64,000 nt of DNA from sequence record ON529860.1. The stretch is one strand, 5' to 3'. The notes under the pieces were generated by a model. It was not told the origin of the DNA. It worked only from the letters and a program-made list of their open reading frames with translations, and made no database searches. Below are positions 25,168-56,089 of this stretch, piece by piece. Within the stretch, counting starts at the first letter, position 1, and every line of letters starts with the position of its first letter. The position numbers were made by a program, and so were the translations under genes.

Positions 25168-25320
25168 TTAACCTTAACGGGGCGTTAACCTTAACGCGGT
25201 TTTGGTTAACGGGGCATTAACCTTAACGCCTGGATGGTTAACGAGGCGTTAACCTTAACGCGGTGATGGTTAACGGGCCGTTTACCTTGACGGCGGGAGG
25301 GTTAACGGCCCCAGGGTTAA
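25168..25320. repeat. dense TTAA half-site array, 32-bp period (TTAA-N7-TTAA-N2-TTAA-N11)
   Basis: N7 pairs start at 25174,25206,25238,25270. Confidence 0.9.
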
Positions 25321-25329
25321 TCGGGGCGG

Positions 25330-25533
25330 CGTCAAATCGCGCTCCCGTCAAATTCGGCCGGCGTCAAATCGAAACGGCGTCAAGTCAAATCTGTCGCGTT
25401 GAAGCGCGCTCGCGTCAAATCGGCCGATCGTCAAATCGCGCTCGCGTCAAATCCAGATCGCGTCAAATTCGCGGGGCGTCAAATCGCGCTCCCGTCAAAT
25501 CGATCGCGCGTCAAATCGGCGAGGCGTCAAGTC
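25330..25533. repeat. 16-bp-period CGTCAAAT array (about 13 units)
   Basis: GTCAA(A/G)T at 25331,25347,25363,25379 then 25414,25430,25446,25462,25478,25494,25510,25526; includes one copy of the 36-bp unit from 7.7 kb. Confidence 0.95.
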
Positions 25534-25766
25534 GACCGGGCGGCCTGAAGCGGGCCGGCGTCCAGTCGGGCTGCCAGGGCGCGCCCGAGCGGGCTTGCGC
25601 GGCGCTCCGCCTCCCAGGGAGGACACCTGGAAGAAACGGCCTGAAGCGCGCCCTGGCGCCTCTTTCTAACCTGAGCCGGGGCAGGGTCAAGCCGAACAGG
25701 GTCGAGAAGGCCGTTTTCCGGGCCGTGGAGCGCCCTGGCGCGGGCGGGGCGACCGCAGGGCCGCTG

Positions 25767-26216
25767 GAGTCACGAAACCCATCCACGGGCCGGAAAACCA
25801 GCCAGGACGGGCGATTGTCAGTCACGATACCCACCATCTGTGACTCTGCCGGGATTTTTGTCAGTCACGAAACCCGGAGGCGGGCTTCGCCGGCGATCCT
25901 GGCGCCCAGGCGGATCAGTGTCAGCGGTTGTGTCAATGCGGGACACAATAAGGCGGGATTAGGGCGAAATGGGATTTCAGGGCGGAGTCACGTTTGCCGA
26001 AACGGGCGCTCGGGACTTCTGTTGATTTCATTGAGGTTTTTCGCCGGAGCCGGGCGTTTTGGAGTCACGATTGCCGTTGTGCGGTGCAGCAATGCGCCGG
26101 ATTTGAGCGGGTCCAGGCGGGGCGAAACAGAGTCACGTTTTCCTAAGCTGTTGGGTTCATTACGCTTTTTAGGGTGGGCCAGCACCTGAGTCACGTTTGA
26201 CACGAACGATGACTCC
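25767..26216. repeat. GAGTCACGWWWNCC motif cluster
   Basis: Copies near 25767,25820,25863,25985,26062,26130,26188; two form N14 palindromes. Confidence 0.85.
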
Positions 26217-36020: not shown

Positions 36021-36502
36021 TTGGATCGTAGCCTCGCCCAGCAGCGTTTCAGCACCACCGTCTGGACGGCGTCACAGCACTCGGACCTCCACGACGGGGC
36101 GGCCGAACCGAGTCCAGGGCGACCGGAGGTTGGCTGGCGAAGCCAGTCACGACGGAACGCCGCAGGCGTTCAGGAGTGGAAGCGAGCGATGACATTAGGA
36201 TTTGTCACCGTGCCCTTACAATCTGTCTCTGTCATTTTCCACGGCGGTGGTTGACAGCACCACCGGCAGTCCGTAGACAACCTGGGCCGGGAGCGTTCTG
36301 CTCAGTCCGTGACCGGCTCTGGAAGAGAAGAGCGGCCGGCGCCTCCCGTACAGAGGATGCTGGTCGCTCCGATCTCACCCCTGGCAGGCTCGGACTTTCC
36401 TGAACTTTCCTGAAAACTATCCCAACATTCCGAAGGGTCCCGCAGGACCACCGCCGTGTTGCATGTGGGACCACCGTCCGCATCGCTGCGCCAGGGCGGC
36501 TT

Positions 36503-36555
36503 CACTCGTGGGCTTCGCCCCCTCGTGACCGGCTCCGCCGGCCGCACCTCCGGTC
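36503..36555. repeat. 53-bp triple-hairpin dispersed element, copy 2
   Basis: Alignment with the other three copies. Confidence 0.85.
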
Positions 36556-36736
36556 TCCTGGTTCCGACAAGGCCTGGCACGGCTGAAGCGCAGGACCGGC
36601 CGCTGCGTCAACACGGTGGTCCGTCAAGGCCCGGCACGGCCGTGTATTGCTTAGACTTCCCTGAAAACTATCCCAACAAATCGCAACACCCGAGCCGGTC
36701 AAACCGATTTTCAACCGACTCGGGCTCACGCCGGAC

Positions 36737-38939: not shown

Positions 38940-39392
38940 TTAAGGGGTCCCGAGCACGGTAACACGGCGGACGGCGGTCGCATAGTTGTCGAACGCATTG
39001 CCTCGGATGCAGAAGGAGACGATGTCCCCCGGCTTGAACCGGTTGTCAGCCTCGGCGATCCAGGCGTCCCCGTCGACAGGGCCTGTGCGGCGCGCGTAGA
39101 GGCGTCCCGAGGGGTGGGTGCGCACGATCCCCCTGTAGCGGTTGTTCCTCAGCTTACGAACATCAACCGCGTGGACGGCTCCGTCCTCGGTGACCTGGAG
39201 ATCGAACGCCACGCGCTCCCCCGCATACAGGGGTGGGCGGTCGGGGCGGAACGCCTGGTCCGTGAGCAGGGGAACGACCACGTCTCCTGTGGTGGTGTCC
39301 GTGATGATGCTATAGGCCCCATCGCGCCGGTCGAGGTAGCCATCCCTGACGTATTCCTTGCGGAAGGCGTACTCTTGTGGTGTCTCAGTCAT
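38940..39392 (-). CDS. protein with two cold-shock-like OB domains, 150 aa
   Basis: LYAGERVAFDLQVTEDGAVHAVDV and FKPGDIVSF resemble the CSD C-terminal strands. Confidence 0.65.
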   Translation of the reverse strand: MTETPQEYAFRKEYVRDGYLDRRDGAYSIITDTTTGDVVVPLLTDQAFRPDRPPLYAGERVAFDLQVTEDGAVHAVDVRKLRNNRYRGIVRTHPSGRLYARRTGPVDGDAWIAEADNRFKPGDIVSFCIRGNAFDNYATAVRRVTVLGTP

Positions 39393-40105
39393 TAGTCTTC
39401 CCTTCTCTCGGGCACGCCGAACACCGCGTCCGGGTATTGGTCGTGGCTGTAGTCCTCGACCGCGTCGAAGCCTTGCTCCTTGGCGATCTCCAGGGCCTCG
39501 TCGGCGCTGCTGGCGCGGATCGTCCACTGGTCGCGGTTGGTCCAGGTCACGTCGATGTCGTAGAGGCCTTCGCCTTCCGGCTCAGGTTCCGGCGTCGGGT
39601 CGGGCACGGTGATCGTTATGGCGGTGGTCTCGGCCGCCTGGCCCTGGACCGTTTCCCGAAGGGTGACGACACCTTCGTTGGTCGCCGAGAGGACTTCGAC
39701 ACGGTGACCCTGGAGCGCGCTCAGGCGCCCTTCTTCTCTGGCCGCCGCGATGACCCGATTGAGGTAGTAGCGCGACACCCCGTCCATGAAGACCTTGAAC
39801 TCGGGCTCCAGCAGCACGCGGCGGATGAAGGCTTCGTCGGTCACATAGGCGCCGATGTTCGACCGCAGGAAGCGGTGGCGGTAGTCCGGCAGCGTCTCGG
39901 GCGCGACCGCGATCAGATCATGCGCGACCAACTCGGACCCCTCGCCCCGCAGGGCGAACTCGACCTGGGCGTTGCGAGGCAGATCGGTCAGGCCCTGCTG
40001 AGCGCCGTCGGCGACGCGCACCGTTCTTACTGTGGGTTCGCGCTGTGCGATGAACCAGCGGTTGTTGAACTGGAAGAGTCCACCGCTATTAGGGCGTTCG
40101 GTCAT
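39392..40105 (-). CDS. protein with N-terminal cold-shock-like domain, 237 aa
   Basis: LPRNAQVEFALRGEGSELVAHDL segment. Confidence 0.6.
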   Translation of the reverse strand: MTERPNSGGLFQFNNRWFIAQREPTVRTVRVADGAQQGLTDLPRNAQVEFALRGEGSELVAHDLIAVAPETLPDYRHRFLRSNIGAYVTDEAFIRRVLLEPEFKVFMDGVSRYYLNRVIAAAREEGRLSALQGHRVEVLSATNEGVVTLRETVQGQAAETTAITITVPDPTPEPEPEGEGLYDIDVTWTNRDQWTIRASSADEALEIAKEQGFDAVEDYSHDQYPDAVFGVPERRED

Positions 40106-44763: not shown

Positions 44764-44783
44764 GACCACCGCCAAGGCGACTT

Positions 44784-44836
44784 CACTCCTGCGCTTCGCG
44801 CCGTCGTGCCCGGCTCCGCCGGCCGCACCTCCGGTC
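44784..44836. repeat. 53-bp triple-hairpin dispersed element, copy 3
   Basis: At a convergent operon junction. Confidence 0.85.
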
Positions 44837-44956
44837 GCCTGAAGTAGACGACGTGGTTGACTCAGGCGATACGCCGATGCGGCTCACGCCCGGCACCGCC
44901 TCTCAGGATCGCCGGCTGAAACGTCGAACCGCCGCAGGGCTAGGCCCGGCACGCCA

Positions 44957-51933: not shown

Positions 51934-52099
51934 CGGCGCTCCTTCAACGGTTCCTTCGCCGTGTAAAGGAACGGTGTGAGGAATACAAGCAGAACTTCTT
52001 GCCGCCTGACAAGATTCATGTCACTCAGGATTTACCGTCAGGGATGACCCCTGCCGGCGCCAGGCGGCTGCGGCCGTCGATCGAAAGGACCACCGCCCC

Positions 52100-53284
52100 A
52101 TGAGCGGCACTGACCTGCGCGTCCGCGCGCACATCACCTATTCCGTCGCGTCCTACCGAGATACGGGCAAGACCGGCACGAGCCGGGAAGTAGGCTCTGG
52201 TTTCACGGCCGACGTCGCAAACGAAATCGCTAAGGCCGTGCATGCCGTCGCCGACGCCCCGCGCGACCTGACCCTGGTCAACGTCACCGACGCCACTTAT
52301 GAAATCGCGAAGGCTGCGCATCACGTCAGTCAGATCGTCGATGCCCCTGAAGGGACAGCCTACCTCATTGAGCGCCTGTCCCCGCGCCAAGTCCGCCTGA
52401 CCGAAGTCACGCCGCAAACGCAGCGCTACACGCTCGACGCCACGGTCTTTGACCTGAAGAGCAGCCTGGGTAACCTCCAGACCGTCGCCGATACGGTCAA
52501 GGATTCCGTCATGCGTGAGATCAGCCGCATCAACCTGCCCGAGCGGTGGGATGACCTGTCGAGCGAGACCACCCGGCGTGGGCTGGAGGCCTTCATGGCG
52601 GTCCAGACGGTGGGCAAAGATGCCTGGCGGGATCATGAGATCGAGGGGATGGTGAATCGCATCGCTCAGCGCACCGGCAAGGCCAAGATCGACCTGCGGC
52701 GTATGTTTGAGAACGCCCAGGAGCGGGTGATGGAAGCCAAACGCATCCTGGCGGACGCCGTACCCACCTCGGCGCCCCTGACCGCGCGTGAAGAACACTA
52801 CTGCAAGAACCGCGCGAAGGGCTGCACGCCCCACGACGCCGCGCGCTATGCGGGGTTCCTCAACGATCCGACGTCGCCGTTCAATACCGCCCTGCTGGAA
52901 AACTCACCCCCGATCCAGGCGCGGATCGCGGAACTGATCACCGCCCAGGCGCCAGCCGACGCCTCAACCACGATCAAGACGCCGTCGGCAGACGCCTTCC
53001 GTAAAGGCGTCGTCCAGAAGACTGCTGAGGCGGAGTTTGCGGTGGGGGCCGCCGTCTGGGAAGTTCCGGCCGATCAGGTGCCGCCCAACGGCTCCTACCG
53101 CCTGGACAACGCCACGCAGGAGTTCTTCGCCATGAACATCGGCTTCTACGGCATGACGGTCGAAGCGGCCGCCAAGCAGATGAGCCTGCCGCTGGAAACA
53201 GCGGACGGTCTGATGCAGATGCCGTCGGTGAAGGCGCGGATCAAGTTCTTCCAGCGCTGCGCCGCCTGGGGCGAACGCGGATGA
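52100..53284 (+). CDS. hypothetical protein, 394 aa
   Basis: AAGGA RBS; long ORF. Confidence 0.8.
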   Translation: MSGTDLRVRAHITYSVASYRDTGKTGTSREVGSGFTADVANEIAKAVHAVADAPRDLTLVNVTDATYEIAKAAHHVSQIVDAPEGTAYLIERLSPRQVRLTEVTPQTQRYTLDATVFDLKSSLGNLQTVADTVKDSVMREISRINLPERWDDLSSETTRRGLEAFMAVQTVGKDAWRDHEIEGMVNRIAQRTGKAKIDLRRMFENAQERVMEAKRILADAVPTSAPLTAREEHYCKNRAKGCTPHDAARYAGFLNDPTSPFNTALLENSPPIQARIAELITAQAPADASTTIKTPSADAFRKGVVQKTAEAEFAVGAAVWEVPADQVPPNGSYRLDNATQEFFAMNIGFYGMTVEAAAKQMSLPLETADGLMQMPSVKARIKFFQRCAAWGERG

Positions 53285-53628
53285 AGCGCGTCTTCGACGA
53301 CCATGGGCTCTGGAACCCGGAGGCTCACGCCGCCGGGCTCCGGGTGTCTCCTCTGGTGAAACAGGCGTTCGAACTACTGCTGAACGAAGGCTACAATCCT
53401 CGCGAGGCGCAGGCCCTGATCACCGTCACCGTTGATGAAGAGACCCTGGACCGCGTCCTCGCTGTCAAGCATCGGCTGCGCCTAAAACAGGCGGGCCACG
53501 CCGAGGCGGAGCGTGTCGGCAACCTGCGCCGGCATGTGCCGTTCCCGCCGGCCGACCACCCCGTCTTCACGCCCGAGCATAAGGCGAAGGCCTTCGACCT
53601 GGTGCGGCCTGAGGGAGAATCGACGTGA
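53281..53628 (+). CDS. hypothetical protein, 115 aa
   Basis: ATGA coupling. Confidence 0.75.
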   Translation: MKRVFDDHGLWNPEAHAAGLRVSPLVKQAFELLLNEGYNPREAQALITVTVDEETLDRVLAVKHRLRLKQAGHAEAERVGNLRRHVPFPPADHPVFTPEHKAKAFDLVRPEGEST

Positions 53629-53903
53629 GCCCTGGGTACAAGGCGGTGGCCGTCCAGGACGGCGTCCTTCGAAACCGCTACGGATACGAGCAACGTGTCG
53701 CGCCGGGCTGCTTCACCATTGCGGACGAGCACGACAACCCGATCCGCACCCATGACGGCTTCGCGGTCTTTGCCAGCCTCAAGGAGGCGGCCTGGTGCGC
53801 CGAGTTGATGCAAAGTGCCTATTTCGAGGGCGAGGCCAGCGTCAAGGCGGCCATGCGGAACCTGCTCGACATCCCTGAACCACCGGACGACGAAGACGGC
53901 TGA
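53625..53903 (+). CDS. hypothetical protein, 92 aa
   Basis: GTGA coupling, GAGGGAG RBS. Confidence 0.75.
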   Translation: MSPGYKAVAVQDGVLRNRYGYEQRVAPGCFTIADEHDNPIRTHDGFAVFASLKEAAWCAELMQSAYFEGEASVKAAMRNLLDIPEPPDDEDG

Positions 53904-53907
53904 AGGC

Positions 53908-53936
53908 TTGACGGTATGGAGGCGGCCGTGCTAAAC
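53908..53936 (+). promoter_or_regulatory. sigma70-type promoter TTGACG-N16-GCTAAAC
   Basis: Matches the Caulobacter housekeeping consensus TTGACG...GCTANAWC. Confidence 0.75.
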
Positions 53937-53944
53937 AACGCCCC

Positions 53945-53977
53945 ATGCTGACCGCCCTGAGACTCAGGACTGCCTAA
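53945..53977 (+). CDS. leader micro-ORF MLTALRLRTA (AGA and AGG codons)
   Basis: ATG at the expected start site (leaderless); stop overlaps terminator. Confidence 0.5.
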   Translation: MLTALRLRTA

Positions 53978-54003
53978 GCGCCCCAGACCACCGGGGCGCT
54001 TTT
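53976..54003 (+). terminator. intrinsic terminator directly before the tRNA
   Basis: AAGCGCCCC-N8-GGGGCGCTT followed by TT. Confidence 0.75.
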
Positions 54004-54005
54004 CG

Positions 54006-54080
54006 GCGTCTATGGTGTAGCGGACAGCACATCGATCTTCTAAATCGAGAGCCCTGGTTCGAATCCAGGTAGACGCGCCA
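54006..54080 (+). tRNA. tRNA-Arg (UCU)
   Basis: Acceptor GCGTCTA/TAGACGC, D stem GTGT/GCAC with A20, anticodon loop CTTCTAA, T loop TTCGAAT, encoded CCA. Confidence 0.95.
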
Positions 54081-54134
54081 CTGTTCAGTCGTCAGTCATA
54101 TTGACAATGACTGTCTGGATGGTAATCAACCGAC

Positions 54135-55100
54135 ATGGCTAAGTTGACTGGGCGTGAGGAAGAAGTCGTTCGGCGCGTGCGCGCCGGCGAACGGCAGACG
54201 GAAATCGCACGCGATCTTGGGGTGACGATCTCGTCGATCAGTCTCTGTGTTCGTCGCCATGCCCCTGAACTCAGTCGAACGAACCCGACCCCCGCTCAAC
54301 GCGCCGTCATCATCAAGGCAATCAAGGCGGGCATGCCCGTGGCGGAAGCGGCGCTGAAATACGGCTATGCCGCCCATACGTTGTCGTTGTGGCTCAAGCG
54401 CGGTGTGGGCACCCGCGAGCCCGTCGACGCCGCCTACATCGTCCAACTCTACGAGACCGGCGACTACACCATGACGGCGTTGGGGGCGGCCTACGGCGTC
54501 TCGCGTGAACGCGTCCGCCAGATCATAGCGGCGGCGAACCTCTCCAAGTCCCGGCGAGAGATACAAATTCAACGTGTGGCTTCCCAAGCCGCCGACATTC
54601 GCCAGCGCTACCTCGCGGGCGAGGAGCCCGCTGACCTGGCGCTGGCGTTGGATGTGGATCGGCCGGTCATCGAGTTTTACGTCGAAGGGTGCTCCAGGCA
54701 GGCGGCGGCGCGCATGTTCAACTATGAGGACATGATCGCCGACTATCGTTCTGGGACTTACACCACCACCGCCCTGGCTGAAAAATACAACACCAGCCAG
54801 ACCAACATCAGCGCAGTGCTCCAGCGCCACGGGGTGGACACCAAAGAGGCGCGCTGCGCCGAGAAACGCCGGCATATCCCAGAGCGCTTCCGCGCCAAGT
54901 GCAGCAGCCTGCGCCAACTTCTCGACACCACCGCCGTCGTGACGTGGTTCCAGGAGGATGAGAGCCGCACGGCGCTCGACCTCGCAGAACTCTGCGGAGT
55001 GACCCCGGCGACGATCTTGCGCATCACCACCACCGCCGGAGTAAAGACGGGGCGCAAGCGCCGACGTCGAAAGCCACTCCTGCGCTGCGCGCCGTCGTGA
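54135..55100 (+). CDS. protein with six tandem helix-turn-helix motifs, 321 aa
   Basis: QTEIARDLGVTISSIS, VAEAALKYGYAAHTLS, MTALGAAYGVSRERVRQ, PADLALALDVDRPVI, TTALAEKYNTSQTNIS, ALDLAELCGVTPATIL. Confidence 0.85.
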   Translation: MAKLTGREEEVVRRVRAGERQTEIARDLGVTISSISLCVRRHAPELSRTNPTPAQRAVIIKAIKAGMPVAEAALKYGYAAHTLSLWLKRGVGTREPVDAAYIVQLYETGDYTMTALGAAYGVSRERVRQIIAAANLSKSRREIQIQRVASQAADIRQRYLAGEEPADLALALDVDRPVIEFYVEGCSRQAAARMFNYEDMIADYRSGTYTTTALAEKYNTSQTNISAVLQRHGVDTKEARCAEKRRHIPERFRAKCSSLRQLLDTTAVVTWFQEDESRTALDLAELCGVTPATILRITTTAGVKTGRKRRRRKPLLRCAPS

Positions 55101-55127
55101 CCGGCTCCGCCGGCCGCACCTTCGGTC
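55075..55127. repeat. 53-bp triple-hairpin dispersed element, copy 4
   Basis: Overlaps last codons of the HTH gene at a convergent junction. Confidence 0.85.
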
Positions 55128-55236
55128 GACCCCACGCTCAGAATGACCACGCCCGGCACAGCCCTTTCGGCTGTTCCCGTTCGGGATCATCTCGCCCTAA
55201 AAGATAACGCCCGGCACGATCTGCTCCCGAACGGGA

Positions 55237-55662
55237 TCAGACCGCTTGCGGTCGAACCGGCGCCACGTCCGTCTCGTGGCGACGCACCAACGGCGTGTCG
55301 ACGAAACGCTCGTCGGCGAACATCACCCCGACCAGCGCATAGAGGTCGGGATCAGCGGCGAATTCTTCCACCACGTCCATGACGAACATCTCGGCCGTCC
55401 AGCCCCAGCCGTTCGCCTGAACGATGGCCTGGTTCAGATCAAGCAGGCGCTGCACGGCTCGCTCGTCCCACACATAGAGGGCGCCGCCGAAGACGTTGCT
55501 TTCGGCTTCCGTGAAGACACGGTGCTTGAGATCGGTGGTCTGGAGCCAGGCCAGAGCCCGCTCCAGGGTCCACCCCGCCATAACGATGGTGCCCAGCGGC
55601 AGATACCCCATGGGCTTGTCGCGACCGACCCGCAGGAGATCGTTCATATAGGCTTCGGACAT
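55237..55662 (-). CDS. hypothetical protein, 141 aa
   Basis: AGGAGGA RBS. Confidence 0.8.
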   Translation of the reverse strand: MSEAYMNDLLRVGRDKPMGYLPLGTIVMAGWTLERALAWLQTTDLKHRVFTEAESNVFGGALYVWDERAVQRLLDLNQAIVQANGWGWTAEMFVMDVVEEFAADPDLYALVGVMFADERFVDTPLVRRHETDVAPVRPQAV

Positions 55663-55747
55663 GGGTCCTCCTGGTTCAGATATGACGCGTTCGGCCGCGC
55701 AAGGCGTCAGATATGACGCAGACGGGCAAGGTCACGCGGTTGTTGGG

Positions 55748-56089
55748 TCAAGCCGCGAGCGCGGCGATGGTCAGGGAGACCGCCGCCATAAGGACCATCT
55801 TGTGGGCGCCGCCGATCAGGCTGTCGCCGTAGGAGAGCGAGGCCGGGTCGCCCCAACTCCGGCGCTCCCGCCCCGCCAGCGTCAACATGCCCGCGAACAG
55901 GACGAGGAAGCCGGCGGTCGCCAGGAAGGTCAGGACGACCCAGCCCGCCGACAGTGGGAAGAAGGCGAACATGCCCCAGACCAGAAACAGGCCCAGGCTG
56001 AACCCGCCTTCGATGTCGCGGTGCAGGGGTTCGTAGTCGGCGGCCGCCATGCGGGCCGAGGCGAGACGCAGGTGAGTTTCACGATCCAT
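55748..56089 (-). CDS. membrane protein, 113 aa
   Basis: Three hydrophobic segments. Confidence 0.75.
   Translation of the reverse strand: MDRETHLRLASARMAAADYEPLHRDIEGGFSLGLFLVWGMFAFFPLSAGWVVLTFLATAGFLVLFAGMLTLAGRERRSWGDPASLSYGDSLIGGAHKMVLMAAVSLTIAALAA

Follow-up and report, generated by a model that had tools for sequence, protein, structure and literature searches.

In attenuators of the trp type (trp, his, leu, thr, pheST), a short leader open reading frame (ORF) with reporting codons is followed by a hairpin and a U tract. The same order of elements was found ahead of a tRNA-Arg(UCU) gene in the genome of Brevundimonas phage vB_BpoS-Papperlapapp. With its promoter, this cassette occupies positions 53908–54080 of a stretch of 64,000 nt (the window), which corresponds to bases 62001–126000 of record ON529860.1 (100% identity match). 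The locus differs from trp-type attenuators in that the regulated product would be the tRNA itself and not an enzyme or a synthetase, the leader ORF is a predicted leaderless one of 10 codons, a mutually exclusive antiterminator is absent, and a ribosome at the stall sites would be too distant from the hairpin to disrupt it. The leader, numbered from the A of the ATG (53945) to the base before the tRNA (61 nt), is by this test not a trp-type attenuator, because it has no antiterminator.

In pyrBI-type attenuation, the end of the leader ORF overlaps the hairpin base, so that a ribosome there blocks the hairpin. This geometry was also found in the phage leader; however, coupling in pyrBI depends on UTP-sensitive pausing of the polymerase, whereas here it would depend on the speed of AGA/AGG decoding, and no conserved pause element was found. 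In the translational attenuators of ermC, cat and cmlA, the leader pairs with a downstream functional RNA, which a held ribosome releases. Such pairing was found here as well, but what would be sequestered is part of a tRNA (its 5′ acceptor strand and D arm) instead of a ribosome-binding site, and stalling would respond to tRNA supply instead of an antibiotic. The R-x-R motif of the predicted peptide is at most a resemblance to macrolide arrest peptides.

T-boxes are likewise 5′ leaders with a codon and a terminator in which the level of one particular tRNA is sensed, as is proposed for this locus. Unlike it, they bind the tRNA without a ribosome, are about 200 nt or longer, have conserved motifs, and control synthetase or transporter genes. 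An Rfam search at E up to 10 gave no match besides the tRNA, and T-box architecture was not found in the 61-nt leader; the leader is thus not a T-box. In the AGA-AGG pair of lambda int and in the bar minigenes, early AGA/AGG codons or short ORFs affect the tRNA-Arg pool and peptidyl-tRNA drop-off. The phage context and the very short ORFs or early AGA/AGG codons are common to those systems and this one, but the former deplete tRNA or limit the translation of a protein gene and do not stand ahead of a tRNA gene. The 3′ external spacer of glyW-cysT-leuZ, a regulatory RNA cut from a tRNA precursor and acting in trans on small RNAs, is likewise a transcribed precursor spacer with its own function; it lies 3′, whereas the phage element is a 5′ leader matched to its own tRNA. 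Phage tRNAs are usually viewed as constitutive helpers of codon usage and, recently, as spares against tRNA-cutting defences. A literature search returned no tRNA gene under the control of a leader ORF with its own codons, and we know of none.

We propose, with a rough probability of 0.35, that ribosome occupancy of the leader controls the folding and maturation of the tRNA. The locus would be a self-contained expression cassette for the phage tRNA-Arg(UCU), with the 61-nt 5′ leader as its regulatory element. The elements of the cassette, their conservation and the complementarity between leader and tRNA were established from the sequence and its comparison with relatives; the features are as follows.

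53908–53914, + strand: −35 box TTGACGG, 7/7 against the Caulobacter RpoD motif TTGaCgS, invariant in five phages.
53930–53937, + strand: −10 box GCTAAACA of the GCtANAWC type, 6/8 to consensus, with the hexamer TAAACA at 53932–53937.
53945–53977, + strand: predicted leaderless mini-ORF MLTALRLRTA plus stop, with AGA at 53960–53962 and AGG at 53966–53968 (sequence, conservation).
53946–53974, + strand: anti-tRNA segment, leader nt 2–30, antisense to tRNA nt 1–24, with leader nt 2–6, 8–11, 16–26 and 28–30 opposite tRNA nt 20–24, 15–18, 3–13 and 1–2 (precursor folds, duplex tests).
53956–53968, + strand: small hairpin CCTGA-GAC-TCAGG over AGA/AGG, arms 53956–53960 and 53964–53968 (fold).
53976–54003, + strand: terminator-like hairpin AAGCGCCCC/GGGGCGCTT of 9 bp with an 8-nt loop, then TTTT (fold).
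54006–54080, + strand: tRNA-Arg(UCU) with an encoded CCA end (ARAGORN; Rfam tRNA model, 65 bits).
53625–53903, + strand: upstream gene for a 92-aa protein without a Pfam match, the last of a three-gene + strand unit.

All the elements that a first-pass annotation had listed between 53908 and 54080 were present there. Papperlapapp is a giant phage of the Dolichocephalovirinae with a genome of 356,874 bp, and its host is B. pondensis LVF1; G+C content is about 65% throughout the window. The phage was reported to have 24 tRNA genes (PMC10070969), 20 of which are located in two minus-strand clusters far from the window. The tRNA-Arg (anticodon TCT in DNA) is the sole tRNA found in the window by ARAGORN and stands alone; its cloverleaf and UCU anticodon are those of a bacterial tRNA-Arg(UCU) gene. 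The stop of the upstream gene lies 5 nt before the −35 box.

The mini-ORF reads ATG CTG ACC GCC CTG AGA CTC AGG ACT GCC TAA. The 97 genes annotated in the window comprise 15,451 codons, of which 8 are AGA and 38 AGG (0.52 and 2.46 per 1000 codons); this is 0.7% and 3.1% of Arg codons, so both are rare, as the first-pass annotation had stated. Nine of these 46 codons sit in one gene of 307 codons (25266–26189, + strand) within a stretch of lower G+C at 24–28 kb; no Pfam match was found for the genes richest in AGA/AGG (25266–26189, 39392–40105 and 38940–39392). Since 3.3% of short ORFs contain both codons, the observation in one genome is no more than suggestive, and it is conservation that gives it weight.

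Seven Brevundimonas phages were compared. Lineage 1 comprises Papperlapapp, Domovoi, Bambus, Marchewka and Kabachok, and lineage 2 comprises Kikimora and Gurke. A 10-codon ORF at the predicted start, with in-frame AGA-x-AGG and a stop forming the hairpin base, was found in all seven, and in each of them the hairpin lies 5–6 nt before tRNA-Arg(UCU). The expectation that relatives keep cognate codons ahead of the tRNA was thus borne out in seven phages of two diverged lineages. The promoter and leader of Domovoi, Bambus, Marchewka and Kabachok are 90–97% identical to those of Papperlapapp; the leader is at least as conserved as the upstream gene (93% versus 79% in Bambus), and the close relatives have three ORF substitutions, each changing the amino acid. 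In lineage 2, about half of the ORF positions are identical to lineage 1 without gaps: ATG CTG ACG ATC AGA CAC AGG ATG ACC GCT TAG in Kikimora and ATG CTG AAA ATC AGA CGC AGG ATG ATC GCT TAG in Gurke, where the codon between AGA and AGG is the common CGC. The AGACNCAGGA block is displaced by exactly 3 nt between the lineages, and the total length is restored downstream. ACC/ACG, ACT/ACC, GCC/GCT and TAA/TAG differ between the lineages in the third position only.

The lineage 2 cassettes are located in another genomic context, behind a separate strong terminator, and still keep the hairpin, the ORF and the codons. Together with the conservation of the leader relative to the neighbouring gene and the covariation of its structure described below, this makes ordinary packing improbable, i.e., that the terminator of an upstream operon happens to follow the tRNA promoter and that the mini-ORF arose by chance. 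Such packing is compatible with the 3.3% of short ORFs that hold both codons and with the fact that the upstream gene of lineage 1 has no other terminator.

The tRNA-Arg(UCU) itself occurs as two alleles (54006–54080 versus L004 4423–4497 and L005 4638–4712), 72–76% identical, with compensatory stem changes. Their distribution over the five close phages does not agree with the relationships of the flanking gene, which indicates an exchange of tRNA alleles by recombination at the conserved leader. The sequence 3′ of the tRNA is unrelated among three groups, and the leader appears as a conserved block bordering a recombining, variable region. Neither a scan of IMG/VR, JGI metagenomes and GTDB genomes with a tRNA pattern common to all seven phages nor a BLAST search of phage records revealed any relatives beyond these seven; the 25 matches of the scan were unrelated tRNAs, mostly in A+T-rich DNA, and none had the leader or promoter. 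Public runs containing the stretch were three wastewater libraries with contigs of low coverage, probably DNA, and a few short pieces, uninformative as to RNA ends, fell on 52000–56000; one 150-nt wastewater contig has the GCTACACA variant of the −10 box.

The promoter boxes correspond to the consensus motifs of Caulobacter RpoD, TTGaCgS and GCtANAWC (PMC8144410), and among the relatives, variation of the −10 box is confined to the N and W positions. The relaxed motif TTGAC-N17-20-GCTANA occurs once in 64 kb versus 0.07 expected. The "consensus promoter" of the first-pass annotation is one for the host family only; an E. coli-type scan of the window did not list it, the hexamer having no T at position 6. 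In lineage 2, the promoter is TTGCTT-N17-TATGCT, followed by six bases and ATG. In both lineages the boxes are kept and the spacer and discriminator vary, a pattern of conservation that looks functional. No acceptable −35/−10 pair was seen by eye between the ORF and the tRNA.

Seven bases separate the hexamer TAAACA from the A of the ATG, which is the only purine in the vicinity, and the −10 spacing puts +1 at or adjacent to this A in both lineages. A leaderless transcript beginning at 53945 is a reasonable prediction from spacing alone. Leader nt 1–11 are predicted to be unpaired, and in Caulobacter, leaderless mRNAs whose 5′ AUG is accessible have been documented as a class (PMC8459731; PMC4117421).

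Whole-precursor folds paired the leader with the tRNA in all seven phages. Leader UGCUG (nt 2–6) pairs with the invariant D-stem CAGCA (tRNA nt 20–24), nt 8–11 with the D-loop (tRNA nt 15–18), the AGACNCAGG(AC) block (nt 16–26) with tRNA nt 3–13, and nt 27–29 with tRNA nt 1–3; the terminator-like hairpin forms the tip of this long stem. The minimum-energy fold of the precursor is 2–10 kcal/mol below the leader and tRNA folded separately. Stability of the duplex was compared with 1000 dinucleotide-shuffled leaders per phage and exceeded the shuffles in five of the seven: Marchewka (p = 0.008), Kabachok (0.013), Kikimora (0.001), Gurke (<0.001) and Bambus (0.027). In Marchewka, Kikimora and Gurke, the leader's own tRNA outdid all 20 other phage tRNAs. 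Adaptation of the leader to the Papperlapapp-type tRNA was considered for the lineage 1 substitutions in Domovoi and Bambus and rejected, the duplex being better in Bambus and weaker in Domovoi. For the other tRNA units of the phage (Trp, Glu/Asp, Pro), complementarity between leader and tRNA was not above shuffles.

The RNAalifold consensus includes the long-range helices between leader and tRNA and, within them, two covarying pairs, 10/77 and 11/76, with both partners changed between the lineages (G-C/A-U/G-U and C-G/U-A). In this structure, 96.6% of cells were paired, compared with 32–54% in slid controls, and none of 500 shuffles matched the covariation score. With seven related sequences, the covariation is supportive, not conclusive. 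That G-U pairs are used argues for an RNA of this strand and against a DNA repeat.

The pairing partner of AGG is C5-C6-U7 of the tRNA in both lineages; in AGA, both A's pair, with U13 and U11, and the middle G forms a G-G mismatch that is kept in all seven phages, although a C at this position (giving ACA) would pair. Pairing alone accounts for the conservation of AGG and, partly, of AGA.

It is possible, and almost as likely as control by ribosome occupancy, that the leader acts as RNA only. It would then be a non-translated pro-sequence that, being antisense to the 5′ third of the tRNA, slows or gates the folding of that tRNA and its processing by RNase P, RNase III or RNase E; the hairpin would insulate and terminate the upstream unit and stabilise the cut-off leader, and the ORF with AGA/AGG would be a by-product of complementarity to tRNA nt 5–13 and 20–24. 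The pairing of AGG and of both A's of AGA in the two lineages, the exact complement of the invariant D-stem directly after the first A, and the covarying pairs 10/77 and 11/76 all agree with such a role, as do the within-lineage substitutions, which all change the amino acid and several of which fall at unpaired or wobble-tolerant positions. Likewise, tRNA-Pro(CGG) of the phage has a terminator-like hairpin 10 nt upstream, for which no logic of cognate codons is required. An RNA-only leader, however, leaves unexplained the shift of the block by exactly 3 nt and the compensated total length, the fact that both lineages have their stop in frame at the base of the hairpin, the retention of AGA instead of ACA at the G-G mismatch in seven of seven phages, the third-position differences between the lineages, and a +1 on the AUG in a host family with leaderless translation.

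The terminator-like hairpin begins within the stop codon (53975–53977), and its arms are 53976–53984 and 53993–54001. Its energy is about −17 kcal/mol within a leader fold of −23.6 kcal/mol; the T run ends at 54003 and is followed by CG and the tRNA. A G+C-rich hairpin of 7–9 bp is kept across the phages with one compensatory and two wobble changes; the compensatory one is the G-C to A-U double change between GCGCCTC/GGGGCGC of Kikimora and GCACCTC/GGGGTGC of Gurke; in both phages, TTTACT and the tRNA come next. Because the U tract has 3–5 U among the seven phages, the hairpin is at best a leaky terminator; an E. coli-type terminator scan of the window did not call it (only 4 T). Of the terminator proposed before the tRNA, a conserved hairpin with a U run was thus confirmed, but the tract is short. 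The small hairpin over AGA/AGG is restricted to lineage 1.

No alternative pairing of either arm of the hairpin is kept among the phages, so a conserved antiterminator is absent from the comparison, in agreement with the first-pass annotation, which had found no classical one. The inverted repeat 53934–53944/53993–54003 was examined as an antiterminator and rejected, as it precedes the predicted start and lineage 2 does not have it. The leader:tRNA pairing supplies the competing structure that was missing before; it acts after the terminator, not on it.

The order of a single-stranded 5′ end, a small hairpin, a terminator hairpin and a U tail is also that of a small RNA. In this case, the promoter-to-hairpin unit would be a ~59-nt RNA that acts as an "anti-tRNA" or regulates some other target, and only read-through transcripts or those from upstream would give rise to the tRNA. 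The high conservation of every base in five phages, even beside two tRNA alleles, agrees with a small RNA; however, no Rfam family was found (the best match, ncS54, scored 18.8 bits versus a threshold of 43), the 5′ half is poorly conserved between the lineages except in the parts matching the tRNA, no other target was found, and the unit always directly adjoins the tRNA. We consider this very unlikely.

Ribosome reach was estimated from the sequence and standard footprint sizes. In lineage 1, the ribosome front would lie at leader nt ~24–28 with AGA in the A site and at nt 30–34 with AGG; in lineage 2, it would fall 3 nt short of these positions. The 5′ arm of the hairpin comprises leader nt 32–40, with a G+C core from nt 34. 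With the stop codon in the A site, the front would be at nt 39–43, and only such a ribosome covers the 5′ arm; a ribosome stalled at AGA or AGG would leave the hairpin intact.

The simplest workable form of the model proposed by the first-pass annotation is occlusion of the pyrBI kind, in which a ribosome at the stop covers the 5′ arm and the polymerase reads into the tRNA. Slow AGA/AGG decoding would free the hairpin and stop transcription. Since only a ribosome at the stop covers the arm, read-through would rise with the decoding of these codons, as positive feedback or a licensing switch. Under direct occlusion, scarcity would give less tRNA, which is the opposite of the tuning that had been suggested; the suggestion that the leader senses anticodon-nuclease attack found no support here. 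Occlusion would fit the position of the stop relative to the hairpin, kept in both lineages, and the small hairpin of lineage 1 could serve as a pause site. It is unlikely, however, since the U tract has 3–5 U only and the scan does not call a terminator, the ribosome must initiate and read 10 codons while the polymerase makes ~45 nt, the pause-like hairpin is not kept in Kikimora or Gurke, positive feedback on a rare tRNA has no obvious use, and the complementarity between leader and tRNA is ignored. Overall, the earlier interpretation is borne out in part: the codons and layout on which it was built are kept in seven phages, but an antiterminator is lacking, the stall geometry is opposite, and pairing gives a non-coding reason for the codons.

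Control by ribosome occupancy, which we prefer, would proceed as follows. The host-type RpoD promoter would start transcription at the A of the AUG, and the first 33 nt would be translated as a leaderless 10-codon ORF containing codons read by tRNA-Arg(UCU). The hairpin would act as a leaky terminator, in Papperlapapp also ending the upstream operon. Read-through transcripts would adopt either the cloverleaf or the leader:tRNA stem, in which the leader is paired with the D arm and the 5′ side of the acceptor stem. This pairing and the hairpin would form one long stem, rival to the cloverleaf, hiding the RNase P substrate. Unless covered, the leader would win, since the polymerase makes the 5′ acceptor strand ~65 nt ahead of its true partner. 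A ribosome on the ORF would keep the anti-tRNA segment single-stranded, so that the nascent tRNA could fold and be matured. The ribosome would dwell longest when AGA/AGG decoding is slow, i.e., when tRNA-Arg(UCU) is scarce; tRNA scarcity would thus raise the yield of mature tRNA, as negative feedback. Of this scheme, the point where transcription starts, the translation of the ORF, the incomplete termination, the misfolding of the precursor and the direction in which control works are all predictions.

That the tRNA gene regulates itself through its own codons in this way, a ribosome awaiting tRNA-Arg(UCU) chaperoning the next one, is a tentative suggestion. Such a ribosome-gated pre-tRNA switch is a kind of control not described for any tRNA gene. 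If true, it would be the first tRNA gene under leader-ORF control, extending the logic of attenuation from enzymes and synthetases to tRNA, and the cassette would be a compact, ~140-nt sensor of AGA/AGG decoding capacity. Even if the leader masked its tRNA at the RNA level only, this kind of pre-tRNA control would be unusual.

Several points weigh against control by ribosome occupancy. The comparison includes only seven sequences from two, at most three, independent lineages, and within the lineages every ORF substitution is non-synonymous. Both codons are present by chance in 3.3% of short ATG ORFs in any frame of the window, and the phage hardly uses AGA (8 of 15,451 codons), so the need for fine control is in doubt. 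Pairing with tRNA nt 5–13 alone largely accounts for the conservation of the AGACNCAGG block, and the AUG could be the start-site purine plus the complement of the D-stem bases CA. In 1000 shuffles, the duplex was not significant in Papperlapapp itself (p = 0.065) or in Domovoi (0.23). Finally, ViennaRNA often underrates cloverleaves, and the misfolded precursor may never be populated.

Downstream of the tRNA, the following features were found.

54094–54128, + strand: hairpin CAGTCAT/ATGACTG with TTGACA at 54101–54106, then TAATCA at 54123–54128; a predicted promoter with +1 at the ATG of the next gene (sequence read directly).
54135–55100, + strand: gene for a 321-aa protein with several HTH/sigma-70 region 4-like domains, annotated as 'RNA polymerase'.
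55072–55131, + strand: copy of a repeated structured element of ~55 nt.

Papperlapapp alone has the gene at 54135–55100, as an insertion that separates the tRNA from the repeated element; the arrangement TTGACA-N16-TAATCA-N6-ATG suggests that the transcript of this gene may itself be leaderless. Other copies of the repeated element are located at 36500–36560 and 44781–44840 of the window (+ strand), L006 2594–2654 and L002 4726–4790. Its core, CCGGCTCCGCCGGCCGCACC, has three exact copies in the window versus 0.09 expected, and the element has three conserved hairpins of small size; + strand units end at two of the three copies in the window. The element is directly 3′ of tRNA-Arg in Domovoi, Bambus, Kikimora and Gurke. 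There are 4–9 copies per genome, copies also occur in the Caulobacter phages CcrColossus and CcrPW, and no Rfam match was found. Two stretches of ~0.9–1.2 kb in this dense genome (35549–36736 and 38054–38939 of the window) have no annotated gene, and one of them holds the repeated element.

Outside the window, the phage encodes a peptidyl-tRNA hydrolase and a peptide deformylase (ON529860.1 162247–162675, L034, and 340–882, L035), which could become relevant if ORFs as short as this leader are translated and end in drop-off of peptidyl-tRNA. In Kikimora and Gurke, an unannotated 27-codon ORF, MKANTTVIGDPGTTCIEGWPAKGTTSI, and the strong terminator stand just 5′ of the tRNA-Arg cassette (L006 2287–2370 and L007 2184–2267).

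Among the other tRNA units of Papperlapapp, tRNA-Trp has a plain promoter. Upstream of tRNA-Glu/tRNA-Asp (L035 7026–7140, minus strand), TTGACA-N17-TACAAG-N6-ATG precedes an unannotated, predicted leaderless ORF of 21 codons, MTYRLTSYEREAFQGRDTTAA; it contains GAA, GAG and GAT, which are uninformative, the amino acids being common. The strong terminator-like hairpin upstream of tRNA-Pro(CGG), the first of its tRNA group, is followed by seven T's ending 10 nt before the tRNA (L035 5670–5730, minus strand), and tRNA synthesis through a terminator may possibly be a wider habit of this phage.

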